From: Thecamonas trahens ATCC 50062
Taxonomy: Eukaryota > Protista > Apusomonadida
Assembly (NCBI RefSeq): GCF_000142905.1
Contig: NW_013657662.1
Location: 434,001-498,000, forward strand
Direction: 5' to 3'
DNA: 64,000 nt
Shown here: piece after piece, positions 2,161 through 9,612 of the stretch
Position numbering within the stretch: position 1 is the first letter of the stretch
How the letters are laid out: each line of letters opens with the position of its first letter
Program-made: the position numbers and the translations under genes
The notes under the pieces: generated by a model
What the model was told of the DNA's origin: nothing
The model's input: only the letters and a program-made list of their open reading frames with translations
The model's database searches: none

Positions 2161-5100
2161 ATGTCGGCTCCGAGGAGACGGCCAAAGTCGAGAGTCTTGT
2201 CGCGGAGGCTGTCGATGGCAAGGCTGCACTCGGGAGATCATCACAATCTACTGCTGGAGGCCAAGGCAAGGAAGATCCAGATGGCTGTCCGCAAGTGGCT
2301 CTTTCGCAGGCGGCACAAGGGTGCTGTTGTCCGGCTGCGCAAGCGCAACTCGGCCGCCAAGGAGATCCTCTCCACCGAAGAGGTGTATGTGGCGCGGCTC
2401 TCCGTCGTTGTCAACGTCTTTCTCGAGCCGCTCCGCTACAACGCGACGCAGGCAGCTAACCCGTTTGTGACGACCGAGGAGATTGGTGCGATCTTCTCCT
2501 CGGTCGAGCTGATTCTGGCACTCAACTCGGAGCTCCTGCTCACGCTCCGCGAGCGGATGTCGGGGTGGAATCCAGGCGACACGCTGCTAGCGGACATCTT
2601 CCTCCACTTTGCGCCGCTCTTTATTCTGTACGCCGAGTACTCGTCCAAGTTTGAAGAGGGGATGAAGACACTGAATCGGCTCGCGGCCGATCCGGGGCGC
2701 GGCCGATTTCTGGCCTTTTTGCAGCACTCGGCGTCGCATCCGGACGTTCCGCATGGCCTCTCGCTCGCCGACCTCCTCATTGCGCCTGTTCAGCGACTCC
2801 CGCGCTATGTCCTCCTCCTTCGCGAGCTCATCCGATACACTCAGCCGCTGCACCCGGACTACCACGCTCTGCAGGATGCCATCGAAAAGGTGACGGCATG
2901 CACATCGTCAGTCAACTCGGCGATCTCGCGCCACGCCGCGCTTGCCTCGCTCCTCGACTTTGACGCGACTATGCTGCCGTCGCCGGCGCTGCCGCAGCTT
3001 GTCCAGCCCTGGCGCCGCCTGCTCGGCAAGTACGACGTGACGACTGACGACGGCTCGCCGCTGCTGCTAGTGCTGTTCAATGACATGCTGCTGTGGGCGG
3101 AGCCGAAGCCGGACTCGATGTACAAGTACGTGGCGTCGGTCGGCCTCGAGTCGTGCGTCCTCGTCCACCACATGTCGCAGGTCGACGCCGCTGAACGCGA
3201 CGAAGGGCCGGAGTTGGACCAGCTCTCGGCCGCGCTGCCTATCATTCCACTTGACGGCTTTCACCTGGCGTGGGGCACCGAGCTCTCCACATTTCACGCC
3301 AAGTCGGCCGCCACTGCCGAGGTGATGATCTCTGATATTCTAGCTGCCATGGACGAGCGGCTGGCCGCCAATCCGGACCTAGTTGTCCGGCGCGCCCGCG
3401 CCGTTGCGCCGCTTGTGTCTCGGCTTCCGGGCCTCGCGGCCTTTGTCCGCCGCTCTTGGGTCGACGATGTGTCGGACGCCGGCGATGCTTCGGAAGACTC
3501 GGACGACGACAACGAGGACCGCGAGACGTCGGCAGCCACCGCATTTCTTCTCGGCGAGAGGGCTTCGGGCGGCGAGCCGTCGACCCGGCCGCGCGCCCCG
3601 TCTGGCACTGCTCGCCGCGGCTCGCTAGTCCCGGTCACTCTTGGCTGGCTCCGCGACCTGAGCATCCCGTCGTACTTTGAGGCCAAGATCCACTACCACC
3701 GCGGCGGCAAGCTCGCAGTGTACAAAGAGCGGCTAGGTGTGGTCGTCCCGCACCTGCTCCTCCTCTTCAAGAACGCCAAGAACTCGTGCTCGCCGTTTGC
3801 CGTCTACCCACTCACCGACGGCGAGCAGGTTCTTGGCGTGAACAAGAAGAAGAAGAAGAAGTCGTTTACACTCTCCATTCCGGGCCTACCACGCCTACAC
3901 TTTTACGTCAAGACGGAGCCGGAGCTCGTCTCGTGGACTGTCGCCCTCGACGCGGCCATTCCCGCTGACGCGGCTTCTGCGCGTCAGTTTGCGGCTGCCT
4001 GGCCACTCTACTCGCGCCTTCTCCATCCAGAGCTGACCAAGTCTGCCATGGTCAAGCATTCGGACTACGCCGAGCTGGTATGGGATACGGTGGCAGCAGC
4101 CACCGGGCGTGCCTTCTCGTGGCCGCTGTCGCGGACCATCCAGCATTTGCTGCGGGCCAAGGACCCGGCCGACGGCGAGTACGAGGACGCCGCATTTGTG
4201 CCTGCTACCGACAACGAGGGCAGCAGTCAGTCGCGCATCAAGCTCTCGCACATCCTCCGTCCAGCGCTGGCCAAAATGCAGAATGATGCGTCGCCAGCGC
4301 AGCTGCGCGAGCTTGGCTTTACCGTTGCCCACGTTCTCCTCTGGGGTCGCGTCACTGCTGGCAACGCGTCGGTTGTGGGCTCGGCGCCGCTGATTCTGGC
4401 CGTCAAACGGGTGACGATTGCGCTGTTCGAGTCGTCGGTCCGCTCGCTTCGCTCGCTCGCCATGCTGCTCACCGTCGAGCTCCTGGTTGCGCCTGAAGTG
4501 CTGATGCATCACTACGCCGAGCTCGATGTGACCGCCGCCGGCGCGGGTCCGCCGCCGCCTGAGGCTGACCGCAACGCCTTTCTCCGCTGCATGGCGCTGC
4601 TGCTGGAGCTGCGGCTGCAAGGGCGGAAGCGGCTCGAGCTGGGCGACGACGCTAAGCTTGTCCACGCTGCGTTTAACGCGCTAGTGGCGCTCGCCTCGGA
4701 CGTCTTTGCCCGCACCGCGCTCCTCGAGCACTCGCTCATTGACCACCTTGTGGCGCTCCTCCGCGGCATGGCGTCGTCATCACGGGTCTCCAAATCGGAG
4801 ACGCCTGTCCACACGGCGGCGGCCAAGGTGCTGCGGCTGCTTGCGCAGCACGACTCGACTCGCCGGGCGGTCATTGAAGCCAAGGGCCTCGACGTCATTG
4901 TGGCTCTCCTCTCCAAGTACAAGACCGAGGTGGAGCGCGCCGAGCGCGAGGCATCATCGACCCAGTCGCGACTCAAGGTCTCGGAGCCGCTGACTAATGT
5001 CATGACCTCGGTCCTTGCAGTCATTCAGTTTCTGTGCGTCAACGACGAGCTTCGCGAGCAACTCGCGTCGCTTGTCATTGTCCCCCACTGCTGGATCTTT

Positions 5101-6764
5101 TTGCCAACTCGGGCTTGCCGGACTCGTTCCGCGCCGCTGTCGGCCTCGCTCTGCAGCACTTTGCATCATCACACACCGGCCGCAAGCTGGCGCAGGACAT
5201 GGGCGCGCTGCCGGTGGCGACACAGGTGATTGTGGCGCTTGCGGCGCAAGCGCCATCGCGGCTTTTTGGCATCACGCTCGCGCTCCTCCAGCACCTCACC
5301 TCGGGGCCTGCACTTGAGAAGCAACTGGTGCTGGACACGTTCCGTGACCTCGGCGGTCTCTCGCCGCTGCTCGCCTTTGTGGCTGCGTACCTTGTCGAGG
5401 CTACTGGCGCGGTGGCGGACTCGGGCTCGCGGCGCGAGTCGGGGTCAGCCAACGGAATGTCTGGGGACGTCTCCGGTTCGTCGGCGCGGACAATGCAGGT
5501 GGCGGCGTTTGCGACGCTCGCCAATGTCATGGAGGGAAATCTCATGAACCGGACGCTGGTGGCGCAGGAGACCTCGCTCCTTCCATGCATTCTCGCGCAT
5601 CTCCACAACGACGAGACCGAACAGCGGGCTCGACTCCACCTGCTCCGAATTGTTGCGTATCTCTCCGAGACGCCAGCCGGCTCGCGAGCCATTGCCGAGA
5701 CACCGAACATTCTTGACTCGATGCTGGCGATGCTGACGTCGGACACGTCGCGGATGCAGCTGCTGGTGGTCCACATCCTGCGGTTCCTCTCACACGACTC
5801 GGCGTTTTCCGAGCAGATTGTCGATGCTGTGGCCGAGCGCGATGCTGTGCCGGGCATCATGCGCGAGCTCTCGTCGTCAGACGTGACCGACGATGACGCC
5901 GCTGTCCACCTTGACCGCCTCGCTGCAGTTCTCTCCATTGACCTGCCCCAGCCAGCATCGGGCCAAGACGAGAGTCATGTCGACGAGCCCGACGAGGAGG
6001 CGCTGACGTCGCTGCTGGTAAGCGACGACAAGGTTGTGGCACGGGTTCGAGCGCTCTTTGCCTGGCAGACGTCTGACAAGACTCAGCTCTCAATCCGAGA
6101 GGGCGACGTCGTTGCGGTCATCGAGACGACCAACGATGAATGGTGGTACGGTGTCCGCGGCGCCAACGAGGGTTACTTTCCCGCGCAGTATGTCGAGCCG
6201 GTTGATGCTGACGCACTGGCGGCGCTCATCGCGGCCAGGAAGCCCGAGGCGGCGGCCGTGCCGGCCAAGCCAGAGGCGACATCCGCAGCGAGCAAGCCTT
6301 CACTGCTCGCCAACGTCTCGGCGTCCTCGCTTCAGCTGGGCGGCGATACCGAGTCGGGCGCCGACACGGCTGTCTGTGCCGACTCTTCCGCCGACTCGGA
6401 CTCTGAATCGTTCACCTACTCGTCGTCGGACTCGTCGCATGCCGCGTACGTTGCCGTTGTGCCAACCAAGGCCGATACCAGCCCTGGAGTGGGCGATTCG
6501 GCGGCAGTGACCAAGGTGGCTTCAGTGGCGGTCTCGGACGTCGAAATTGCCAGCTCGGCCGAGTGCCTCGACATGGCTCTGTCTGAAGCAGCGGCCGAGG
6601 CGGCAGCGGCCGAAATGGTTGTGGCCGAGACGGCAGGCTCGGACTCGGGCTCGTCATCGCCCTCTTCGGGATCGGGCTCGGACTCGGACTCGGGCTCGGA
6701 CTCGGACTCGGACTCGGACTCGGAGTCGGACTCGGACTCGTCCAGCGACTCGTCAGGCTCGTAA
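2161..6764 (+). CDS. RhoGEF with IQ-DH-PH-(PH)-ARM repeats-SH3 and Ser/Asp-rich tail; one frameshift near 5082-5086 joins ORFs 2119..5229 and 5034..6764
   Basis: IQ motif KIQMAVRKWLFRRR; DH motifs EILSTEEVYV, LLIAPVQRLPRYVLLLREL; PH-like LVLFNDMLLW; Leu-rich ARM-like helices; SH3 ALFAWQTSDKTQLSIREGDVV..EWWYG..GYFPAQYV. One extra C in the C5 run gives continuous VIVPPLLDLF. Start uncertain (ATG 2161; 2087 possible with another missing base). Confidence 0.8.
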
Positions 6765-6817
6765 GTGTGACGAGACTCGAGTGGGTGGGCAGTTCAATGA
6801 ACATGTGTGCACTGTAT

Positions 6818-8689
6818 CTACGACGATGATGAGTTCGAGCCCGAGGCGGAGCCGGAGATCGAGGAAGACGCCGAGCTCGAGGCTGACGACGAGCCGGAAG
6901 CTGAGCCGGCCTCAACGGCACCGGCGGCCATGATGCTCGGGCCGGCCGTCTGGCGGTAGGCAAGGTCGGCCTCGTCGGCCCAATCGTAGCCGCCACGGAG
7001 GGTGGAGACGGCGGCGGCAAGGGCAGCGAGGGCGGCGGTGAGGACAAACGAGAGAGCGTTGAAGGCGACGTGGATGTTGTCAACCTTGACGGTGCGAGTG
7101 CCGCGGACGGTGTCGTCGTGGTCAAGGGAGCGGGCAGAGTAGCCCGCGGTGATGCCGTTGAGGGCAAAGGCGACGAGGACAAAGGCAAAGGCAGAGCTTC
7201 CGGTGAGGACGTTCCACTTCCAGACGTGGACGAAAGCGAGGAGGGCGACGCCGACGGTGAACATGCCCGAGGTGATGGTGACGGAGTAGGCCTTGACTGC
7301 TGCAACGTTGATCGAGTCAAACGAGAGGTCGTTGTCGATGAGGTTATCGAAGAAGACTCCCATGAGAACGAGCTCGATCAGGGCGAGGAGGAGAACAAAG
7401 GCAGTGAGGCCGGCGACGATCTTGCGGCCGGCGCGCTTGAGGGCGGCAAACGAGGCGTCGTCCGAGGTGTCCTGCGCATCGCCGACGTCGGCCTCGTTCA
7501 TAAAGTTCACAAAGTAGTCGACGACAAAGATAGTGGCGCCGCCAAAGACAACCTGGACGAGAGTGGCGATGCCGGCCATGGTGACGCGGCTGTCGAGGTC
7601 GCCGGCAATGTTGGACGAGCCGAGGTCCCAGACCTTGAACATGTAAGCGGCAGCCCAGATGTTGAAGACGACGGAGAGGAAGCCGGTGGCGGTGGCCATA
7701 ATGCGCGAGGCGGCGTGCCAGGTCCGGAGGTGGACAAAGGCGGCAAAGATGAATCCAAAGGTAACTGCCGAGGCGAGCATGGCGATGTCCATAAACTGCG
7801 GCGAGGCGTTGTTGTTGGCGTTGGCATCAACCACGCCGTTGTCCAGCGAGCGACGCAGGTTCGAGTTGTGGTACAGGGAGAGGACGACAAGACGGAAAAG
7901 CTCGACGGCAGTGAGGATGCTGGCGGCAATGAAAACGACATGCTTGGGCTTCTCGCCGGCGGCGCCAAACTTGCTGTCGTGCTCAAAGGTCTCGGACGGA
8001 CCAAAGGTCTGCGAGAGCGCTGGCAGGAGGAGGATAACGACGATGACGGCGAGGACAACGACAGCGGCGACAGTGAGGCCGGCGATGCCGGAAAACTCGT
8101 CGGCGAGCTCGACGTTGACGTCCGACTTGCCGACCTGCCACATCTTGATGGCAAAGCCCATGGCGTTGACCTCGAGAGCAAAGGAGATGAGGGCGACGGC
8201 GGCAGTGGCCATGCGAGTGATGACGTTCCAGTGCATGATGTGCATGACGCCGACAACAACAAGGACACAGCCCACAACGGCAGCAAGCTCGGTGGCCTGC
8301 AGGAAGTACGGCGTCGCCTCGTTGGTCTCGTTGGCGTCAAACTTGTTGTCGGACGACTCAAACTTCCGGCCGGTCTTGTCGGCCACAATGGCGAGGCGGG
8401 AGGCGTAAAAGACCAACGCAAGCAGGAGCAGGCCACCAAAGACAGCGCGAGCATTGTAGACGAGCCAAGGCGAGCAGCCACCAAGCGCCGATGACGACTT
8501 GTGCGGGCCAACCGCGCCCGGGCCACCCCATGCACCCTCATCGCCGCTAGCATCCTCGTCCGAGTACACGTTGTCGTAGGTATACGGGTCGGCAGCGGAC
8601 AACGTCGAGCCGCTTCCCGAGTCACTTCCCGAGCTGATTCCCGAACTAGAGTACGACATCTGTCCTTCCGTGACATGAGTGAGTTGCAT
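6818..8689 (-). CDS. Polytopic membrane protein (~12 TM) made of three tandem AWPM-19/PM19-like 4-TM units, with Ser-rich termini
   Basis: Three ~170-aa-period units share N-x-A..F..LA.V..H..W..G/A-F/Y-x-x-K..G. Unit 1 NEATPYFLQATELAAVVG..GVMHIMHW..AMGFAIKMWQVG resembles the plant AWPM-19 consensus. Start ATG 8689 or 8659. Confidence 0.75.
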   Translation of the reverse strand: MQLTHVTEGQMSYSSSGISSGSDSGSGSTLSAADPYTYDNVYSDEDASGDEGAWGGPGAVGPHKSSSALGGCSPWLVYNARAVFGGLLLLALVFYASRLAIVADKTGRKFESSDNKFDANETNEATPYFLQATELAAVVGCVLVVVGVMHIMHWNVITRMATAAVALISFALEVNAMGFAIKMWQVGKSDVNVELADEFSGIAGLTVAAVVVLAVIVVILLLPALSQTFGPSETFEHDSKFGAAGEKPKHVVFIAASILTAVELFRLVVLSLYHNSNLRRSLDNGVVDANANNNASPQFMDIAMLASAVTFGFIFAAFVHLRTWHAASRIMATATGFLSVVFNIWAAAYMFKVWDLGSSNIAGDLDSRVTMAGIATLVQVVFGGATIFVVDYFVNFMNEADVGDAQDTSDDASFAALKRAGRKIVAGLTAFVLLLALIELVLMGVFFDNLIDNDLSFDSINVAAVKAYSVTITSGMFTVGVALLAFVHVWKWNVLTGSSAFAFVLVAFALNGITAGYSARSLDHDDTVRGTRTVKVDNIHVAFNALSFVLTAALAALAAAVSTLRGGYDWADEADLAYRQTAGPSIMAAGAVEAGSASGSSSASSSASSSISGSASGSNSSSS

Positions 8690-9025
8690 AAGTGGGGGGA
8701 ATCCACGCTAGGACCAAGGTGGGGAGGGGGAGGGGGGAGGGGCAAGATCGGCAGAGAATGGGGGCAAGTTGAGCCCAGAACATGCTGGGCTAGCCATCGA
8801 TAGGATCGGGCGGCGAGGACCAAGATCAGTAGAGAATGAGCGAGCAGAGCAGAACAACCAACAGCAGCAAATTCGACGAGATCAGAATCAGGTGCAAAGC
8901 CAAACGAGTACCACGCCTTCCAGCAGCAACCAGCACCAGCATCCATCACCATCACTACCACCAATGCCCAGTCCCAGTCCCCGTCCACCGTCCCCATTCC
9001 ACCGTCCCCAATTCCCAATCCCAAC

Positions 9026-9102
9026 CAACCATACACCCCACCAACTTGCCCAACCAGGTCATCATGCCCACCATGCCCGTCCCCCCTTCACCCTCCCCCC
9101 CT

Positions 9103-9170
<68 letters not shown>

Positions 9171-9238
9171 GACTATCACACACTATGTCACTGTTCGTAC
9201 ACTTTGTGTCGTAAAGTCGAGTCTACCCACCAGTGTTA

Positions 9239-9311
<73 letters not shown>

Positions 9312-9409
9312 GGTTGTGGTCGTCAGAAGGCGGTGTGCGTCCACGACGGGGGGGACGGGCATGGTGAACATGATGACTCGATTGGACAAGCTGGTGGGGT
9401 GGATGATTG
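9026..9409. repeat. Imperfect ~60-bp inverted repeat (9026-9086 / 9349-9409) enclosing (CA)n at ~9105-9170 and (GTC)n at ~9240-9311
   Basis: Left arm accccaccaacttgcccaaccaggtcatcatgcccaccatgcccgtcccccc; reverse complement of right arm accccaccagcttgtccaatcgagtcatcatgttcaccatgcccgtcccccc. Confidence 0.85.
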
Positions 9410-9419
9410 CGCGTAGCTG

Positions 9420-9612
9420 ACAGCGTCGGCGCTGGCGGCGAGGGCGCGGAGCTGACGGCGTCGGCGCTGGTGGCGAGGGTGTCGATGATGTCGGGGAGAA
9501 AAGCCACGCGAGTCATGGCGGCGTGTGGGCTTGCGTCAGCGTAGAGCGCGTACGCGTTGATGAGCGCGGCGTCCAGAATCCAGTACAAGATGGCGTGTCA
9601 CCACTTGCGCGG
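9420..9612 (-). mobile_element. Degenerate piggyBac-like transposase C-terminal fragment
   Basis: Minus strand reads RKW*HAILYWILDAALINAYALY..MTRVAFLPDIIDTL, typical of the segment after the third catalytic Asp of piggyBac transposases; in-frame TGA where Trp is expected; no upstream DDD core visible. Confidence 0.65.

Follow-up and report, generated by a model that had tools for sequence, protein, structure and literature searches.

A triple AWPM-19/PM19-type four-helix membrane protein in a non-plant unicellular eukaryote

AWPM-19/PM19 proteins influence seed dormancy, pre-harvest sprouting and drought responses of crops. The plant members, such as Arabidopsis PM19L1-4, rice OsPM1 and wheat AWPM-19, share a 4-TM unit of ~145 aa, and all described plant members consist of a single unit of about 150-190 aa. 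The window, which is the whole 64,000-nucleotide stretch of DNA analysed here, contains a reading frame of 623 codons that the first-pass annotation had interpreted as a triplicated AWPM-19/PM19-like protein of a non-plant protist. This locus raises the questions of whether the three units really belong to one protein and to this family, how far the family extends beyond plants, and what a chain of three units would tell about the way in which the family works.

One reading frame with three four-helix units

The locus at 6818-8689 on the reverse strand is a genuine gene whose product, an integral membrane protein with 12 TM helices, is composed of three tandem AWPM-19/PM19-type 4-TM units (Table 1). 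Its 623 codons contain no internal stop, and upstream of the ATG the open frame continues for six codons only, giving 629 aa in total. The hydropathy profile shows 12 TM segments, arranged as three sets of four. The full-length AF2 model has a mean pLDDT of 76.9 and a pTM of 0.78, with pLDDT of ~90 or more in the TM blocks. The initial description of one 12-TM protein with three 4-TM units was thus confirmed, with limits near those first given (aa ~81-225, ~250-393 and ~422-563), and so were its Ser-rich disordered ends (aa 1-72 and 590-623, both with pLDDT < 50 in AF2). The N-terminal tail carries an acidic Tyr motif, D-P-Y-T-Y-D-N-V-Y, in the translation. A Pfam scan of the 623-aa protein found neither SH3, nor a signalling domain, nor any other domain besides AWPM-19.

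Contigs from other sources agree with this gene structure. A run made independently on this organism yielded a 925-nt contig that is identical to positions 6726-7650. Contigs with 0-2 mismatches inside the CDS are present in three environmental RNA libraries; they hint at expression and are no proof of it, as contaminating DNA is a possible source. No joints or indels were seen among the contigs matching 6818-8689, which is consistent with a single-exon gene.

Table 1. Coordinates of the gene, its three units and their sequence features
Feature	Window position	Strand	Residues (aa)	Basis or remark
Complete single-exon CDS, 623 aa + stop	6818..8689	-		ATG start; stop codon 6818-6820
N-terminal tail, disordered, Ser/Gly/Asp-rich	8474..8689	-	1-72	pLDDT < 50
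Unit 1, nearest to plant PM19	8009..8455	-	79-227	Unit HMM 93.5 bits; PF05512 42.9 bits
Unit 1, AF2 helices			74-111, 126-153, 156-186, 197-221	AF2 model
H-x3-W of unit 1, TM2-TM3 turn	8228..8242	-	H150-W154	Sequence alignment, translation
Unit 2, AWPM-19-like	7508..7945	-	249-394	Unit HMM 69.0 bits; PF05512 14.4 bits
Unit 2, AF2 helices			246-284, 296-323, 326-358, 367-396	AF2 model
H-x3-W of unit 2	7718..7732	-	H320-W324	Sequence alignment, translation
Unit 3, most divergent	7001..7432	-	420-563	Unit HMM 35.5 bits (aa 420-538 matched)
Unit 3, AF2 helices			421-451, 462-490, 494-526, 538-563	AF2 model
H-x3-W of unit 3	7214..7228	-	H488-W492	Sequence alignment, translation
C-terminal tail, short helices, then poly-Ser/Gly/Ala disordered end	6821..6982	-	570-623	AF2, translation

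In the predicted models each unit is a self-contained up-down 4-helix TM bundle, and the linkers between the units are short and TM-free. Unit 1 modelled alone by AF2 has a pLDDT of 87.7 and a pTM of 0.83. An HMM of the unit, for which 14 relatives with a single unit were the sole source, recognises three full-length domains in a row in the 623-aa protein (79-227, 249-394 and 420-538). In BLASTP, unit 1 matches unit 2 with an E-value of 9e-12 and unit 3 with 6e-5, and units 2 and 3 match each other with 0.04. Pairwise identity among the three is 17-28%, and judged by their sequences the units diverged anciently. The three motifs singled out in the first-pass annotation were each found in all three units, where they are colinear in the alignment: N-x-A before TM2 (N123, N293 and N461), H-x3-W (Table 1), and a basic residue past the end of TM3 (K182, K352 and R520). 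H488 and W492 are near-invariant across a 25-sequence alignment. In the joint alignment with plant proteins, the His never varies, and the Trp and one Gly of TM3 hardly do.

By sequence comparison, the 623-aa protein almost certainly belongs to the AWPM-19 family. Against PF05512, whose curated gathering cut-off is 27 bits, the whole protein scores 45.7 bits, and a genome-wide scan gives 43.5 bits. When the units were scanned separately, the proposed profile match held for unit 1 (42.9 bits), whereas unit 2 fell below the cut-off and unit 3 had no match. Since Pfam defines a domain, the presence of three units is no ground for exclusion from AWPM-19. A phmmer search of 1.84 billion representative proteins gave 25 matches at E ≤ 0.001, 20 of which fit PF05512. 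Among the 25 were a Selaginella "membrane protein PM19L-like" with an E-value of 2.1e-5 and, with 4.6e-4, a protein of Welwitschia. Both plant proteins are also recognised, at 84 and 76 bits, by a plant-free HMM made from non-plant single-unit proteins. Unit 1 is up to 28% identical to Selaginella PM19L, and the plant sequences themselves carry the motifs of units 1-3, namely N-x-A(T) before TM2, the H-x3-W turn and, where TM3 ends, G-[FY]-A-x-[KR]. The homology to AWPM-19 that had been proposed from the letters alone is borne out by these profile scores and by the Selaginella match.

Other searches differed in reach. A language-model search placed AWPM-19 clusters first. Word-indexed protein searches with the core and with the three-unit alignment returned the query alone, probably an effect of low-complexity words in the index, and the same kind of search with the single-unit alignment returned eight proteins, few of them named. 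PF05512 is already assigned to the 623-aa protein in precomputed annotation; its membership in AWPM-19 therefore appears to be discoverable there, yet undescribed.

Hydrophobic 4-TM proteins may resemble each other by composition, and the likeness to AWPM-19 together with the three-unit pattern could in that case be due to chance. The failure of units 2 and 3 to reach the Pfam cut-off by themselves and the poor resolution of the unit tree are in line with such an explanation. However, the real core scores 186.9 bits with the unit HMM, whereas the best of 401 controls, which were reversed, shuffled or block-shuffled versions of the core, scores 5.8 bits, so hydrophobic composition does not account for the signal. 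The score of unit 1 above the cut-off, the colinear motifs in every unit and the three Pfam stretches of the nearest three-unit homologue also speak against chance. We consider chance resemblance extremely improbable and rejected it, as it is contradicted by the Pfam, phmmer, homologue and shuffle-control results.

Three-unit relatives, host and taxonomic spread

Nine three-unit proteins were found: the 623-aa protein, P0002, P0005, P0006, P0008, P0016, P0020, P0025 and a paralog in the host genome. There are thus at least eight such forms beyond the 623-aa protein, with the paralog counted in. P0002 is a colinear protein of 619 aa with 25% identity, in which Pfam scores 91 bits over three stretches; three stretches are likewise detected in P0016. 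P0005, P0016 and P0025 are complete ORFs from independent EukProt transcriptome assemblies. The single paralog of the host, located on contig C57, is divergent, being colinear over 491 residues with 20% identity. It has an intron, and TM1 of its unit 1 is on a separate upstream exon (L004:762-935); its two exons were searched individually, unjoined.

These relatives bear on the possibility that the triple is an artefact of the gene model or the assembly, in which three tandem single-unit genes are read through as one. The metagenome protein P0046, a two-unit form, could be such a case, since its two near-identical copies are joined on a 1.3-kb contig and may be an artefact. At the present locus, however, 623 codons run without a stop through short TM-free linkers, the units have diverged to 17-28% identity, the contig from the independent run is identical to the window over 925 nt, and colinear three-unit homologues come from independent transcriptomes and runs. 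An artefact is hardly credible here.

In the unit tree, the unit-2 clade and the unit-3 clade of the paralog subfamily are each well supported, indicating that the fusion in that subfamily is older than speciation. The remaining order of duplications is poorly resolved, as the units are too divergent. The six units of P0016 and P0025 group together with support of 86/85. Constraining all unit-3s to a single clade lowers the log-likelihood by 27 units (AU p 0.039), which is a marginal result for a group chosen after the tree was made. This sequence pattern is a weak hint that the triple arose more than once, since it could also result from concerted evolution or from long-branch effects.

We take the host to be a marine, non-photosynthetic, integrin-bearing unicellular eukaryote. 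No genes for chlorophyll a/b-binding (LHC) proteins were found in its 28.7-Mb genome, an integrin beta gene is present (143.8 bits), and DNA near-identical to that of the host occurs in estuary and marine metagenomes. Because it lacks LHC genes and has integrin beta, the host is neither a plant nor an alga, in agreement with the "non-plant protist" of the first-pass annotation.

The suggestion that the family is more widespread than plants also proved correct, as its members extend to a choanoflagellate, to a pinguiophyte and to many marine contigs of eukaryotic origin. Single-unit relatives of 150-250 aa are present in marine and aquatic metagenomes, in the choanoflagellate Salpingoeca punica, whose protein scores 32.7 bits against PF05512, and in Pinguiococcus, a pinguiophyte (stramenopile alga). 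In the gene model P0007 of Pinguiococcus, two units can be recognised behind a doubtful N-terminus. Two fragments of the "merc" source, P0003 and P0004, share 52% and 47% identity with unit 3, respectively. Genes neighbouring the metagenomic single-unit forms encode PPR, acyl-CoA oxidase, JmjC, START/EDR2, annexin and protein kinase, so their contigs are plainly eukaryotic. A search of a protein atlas with the neighbouring ACOX gene placed the marine single-unit contigs in eukaryotes and gave nothing finer. A 2025 study states that PM19L1 homologues are confined to land plants, with none outside (PMC12089654), and our non-exhaustive literature search found no description of non-plant or multi-unit AWPM-19 forms. 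With its triple architecture and its non-plant host, the protein adds to a known family a variant that is new in both architecture and taxonomy.

Predicted packing of the three units

The 12 TM helices might suggest a 12-TM secondary transporter such as MFS or APC, an alternative that the first-pass annotation had named and for which no fold support was obtained. A Foldseek search of the PDB with the whole 12-TM model gave nothing at E ≤ 0.001 and TM scores of 0.19 or less, and the ESM Atlas gave no match. In VIA-align wide, all matches were confined to single units and none spanned more. A sequence search of solved structures gave nothing below E 0.8 and so no relative with a solved structure.

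The models suggest that the three units probably pack as a covalent pseudo-trimer. For the single-unit relative P0010, the ESMFold2 homotrimer has an ipSAE of 0.87, whereas none of three controls exceeded 0.00. Among solved structures, the ipSAE mark was reached by 21 homo-pairs out of 30 and by no single chain out of 23, in a calibration made with two copies rather than three. The contacts of the three runs coincide to at least 94%, and the partner pLDDT is 82. The predicted contacts are formed between TM2 (43-68) of one copy and TM3 (72-105) of its neighbour, and TM3 residues 79-87 meet close to the axis. In this pseudo-trimer, neighbouring units would touch near the axis through TM2 and TM3, whose conservation is the highest, leaving TM1 and TM4 exposed to the lipid. 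The cytoplasmic side would hold the two termini, both linkers that join the units and the H-x3-W turn of each unit.

Conservation was compared with this arrangement. Per helix it is highest in TM3 and lowest in TM4, a weak trend in the expected direction. Positions of the predicted interface show no higher conservation than the remaining TM positions; we count this as no support, not as refutation. The first-pass annotation had supposed from the covalent triple that the functional unit is a trimer. The predicted P0010 homotrimer and the recurrent three-unit architecture favour this idea on computational grounds, whereas the two-unit form P0046 and the gene model P0007, with its two recognised units, speak against it. 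The fusion into three suggests that AWPM-19 proteins may work as trimers. By the Rosetta-stone logic, the single-unit members, including plant PM19, would be homotrimers.

A putative sensing scaffold and other possible roles

The protein would most likely serve at the plasma membrane as a scaffold and as a sensor of the osmotic state or the state of the membrane. This role is proposed because Arabidopsis PM19L1 replaces Sho1, an oligomeric 4-TM osmosensor, in yeast, where it complements sho1 (PMC12089654). Docking surfaces in the cytosol would be provided by the conserved turns with their Trp and by the acidic, Ser/Tyr-rich tails. In PM19L1, W79, R80 and D82 of the intracellular TM2-TM3 loop are needed for MKK binding and sho1 complementation (PMC12089654). 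W79 corresponds by position to the conserved Trp of the family, which is present in all three units. In contrast, the turns of the host protein read W-N-V-I, W-H-A-A and W-N-V-L from the Trp onward, and the plant R80 and D82 are absent from them (positions according to PMC12089654). The host protein differs from plant PM19 also in its three units, in its non-plant host and in the long disordered Ser/Gly/Asp tails at both ends.

Sho1 is a 4-TM plasma-membrane oligomer that trimerises via a TM2/TM3 interface (PMC4411306), and the interface predicted for P0010 is likewise TM2/TM3. The 4-TM domain of Sho1 is followed by a cytoplasmic SH3 domain, whereas the host protein has neither SH3 nor another signalling domain, a point against the proposed role. 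Sequence homology between Sho1 and AWPM-19 is not reported (PMC12089654). The likeness to Sho1 is a working analogy, not family membership, and drawing on it we put forward osmo- or membrane-state sensing by a scaffold as a tentative assignment only.

Structural neighbours of the single unit bring other roles into view. The best ones are uroplakin/tetraspanin (Z 14.6-15.8) and Fc-epsilon-RI beta of the MS4A proteins (Z 14.4-14.8), and sarcospan, PRPH2-ROM1, the MARVEL proteins synaptogyrin and synaptophysin, and claudin are further neighbours; the overall range is Z 10.6-15.8 over about 120-150 residues, with one unit matched each. Together with the rank of MARVEL clusters next behind AWPM-19 in the language-model search, they could indicate an organiser of membranes that acts passively, in the manner of tetraspanin, MARVEL or MS4A proteins. 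It would shape membrane domains or partner other receptors and play no part in sensing, the triplication merely raising its local valency. However, soluble 4-helix bundles reach the same Z-scores, so that the unit match is a generic fold match, and the tetraspanin Pfam profile gives E 9.6 on the units, which is no family match. Tetraspanin, MS4A, MARVEL, claudin, sarcospan and LCI1 proteins have the up-down-up-down 4-helix TM bundle in common with the AWPM-19 unit; they show no sequence or profile relationship to it, and none of them joins three units in one chain. The invariant cytoplasmic His/Trp turn, which PM19L1 requires for MKK binding, points to a specific conserved interaction. A passive organiser seems rather improbable to us.

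A solute conduit is another possibility. The protein would then be a channel or facilitator with a path along the pseudo-threefold axis or within each bundle, comparable to OsPM1 or to a small 4-TM channel like LCI1. Rice OsPM1 reportedly mediates ABA influx. ABA signalling is not expected in the host, which is a point against a conduit of this kind. LCI1 is reportedly a homotrimer (Kono et al. 2020). Chlamydomonas LCI1 is among the neighbours of one unit, but its Z of 11.6-12.5 is within helical-bundle noise. The total of 12 TM helices and the enrichment of small residues in TM2 and TM3 would suit a conduit, and a review lists AWPM-19 proteins among ABA importers (PMC9919377). On the other hand, the whole body resembles no solved 12-TM transporter in the searches described above, and PM19L1 did not rescue yeast mutants affected in K+ uptake, in Na+ efflux or in glycerol (PMC12089654). 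A conduit is unlikely on this evidence.

We return to the sensing scaffold. Taken as a whole, the explanation comprising a three-unit pseudo-trimer, a sensor/scaffold role and single-unit members as homotrimers has, in our estimation, about equal chances of being right or wrong. The recurrent three-unit fusions lead to a concrete and testable hypothesis, that is, that a TM2/TM3-mediated trimer is the functional unit. Such a trimer would also account for the replacement of trimer-forming Sho1 by PM19L1.

The presence of members in an integrin-bearing protist, a choanoflagellate and a stramenopile alga implies either that the family originated far earlier or that genes were transferred. It is conceivable, though we would not yet wager on it, that AWPM-19/PM19 proteins are ancient eukaryotic 4-TM membrane sensors whose working form is a trimer held together by TM2 and TM3, and that the fused triples are natural single-chain trimers. 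If this is true, the fused triples, which may be of repeated origin, would disclose the stoichiometry of plant PM19. A single-chain trimer would be handy for structure determination and for mutation of one protomer at a time, and the fused triple would then offer an asymmetric, mutable trimer for dissecting the mechanism of an osmosensor.

Divergent three-unit paralog and a two-unit relative

The T. trahens genome encodes a second three-unit protein, a paralog of the main AWPM-19/PM19-like protein, at about 201.5-203.6 kb (+) of contig C57 (G000). It is very divergent, sharing 20% identity with the main protein, and gave no match when searched alone against Pfam. Its intron, of about 580 nt, is open as a Pro-rich pseudo-ORF. 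The C57 paralog orthologues P0005, P0008 and P0020 have in common a Cys-rich linker (CC..CC clusters) that joins units 1 and 2 and may be a site of palmitoylation or metal binding.

Among the relatives seen, a clear two-unit architecture was found only in P0046, a 321-aa metagenome protein of the P0022 cluster. It is a tandem pair of near-identical AWPM-19 units on a 1.3-kb contig; the pair either arose by very recent doubling or reflects an artefact of assembly or gene calling.

Flanks of the main gene

The main gene and the upstream-strand ORF 5034-6764 converge, with just 53 bp between their stop codons (window 6762-6820), so their 3' UTRs must overlap. At window 6677-6753, over the terminal Ser/Asp codon repeat of the neighbouring ORF, depth rose about 50-fold in all RNA runs compared. 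This peak was rejected as expression because many contigs of the RNA runs aligned there only in part, at 90-95% identity; it thus reflects cross-mapped low-complexity repeats of other organisms.

Long CA/GT and GTC/GAC-type microsatellites lie immediately upstream of the main gene start (window 8950-9420), and spurious ORFs arise from them in several frames.

Tyrosine motifs in the disordered tails

Three-unit proteins repeatedly carry acidic Tyr motifs in their disordered tails, for example D-x-Y-x-Y or a C-terminus that closes with SYYY, YSY or YASYT. The tails concerned are those of the main protein, P0002, P0003, P0005, P0006 and the C57 paralog. These motifs may serve as sorting or phospho-tyrosine docking signals.

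Coordinates of the paralog exons (L004) and of the N-tail motif
Feature	Position	Strand	Remark
C57 paralog exons	L004:762-935 and L004:1513-2928	+ (on C57)	two exons
Acidic Tyr motif, N-tail of main protein	window 8560-8586	-	aa 35-43
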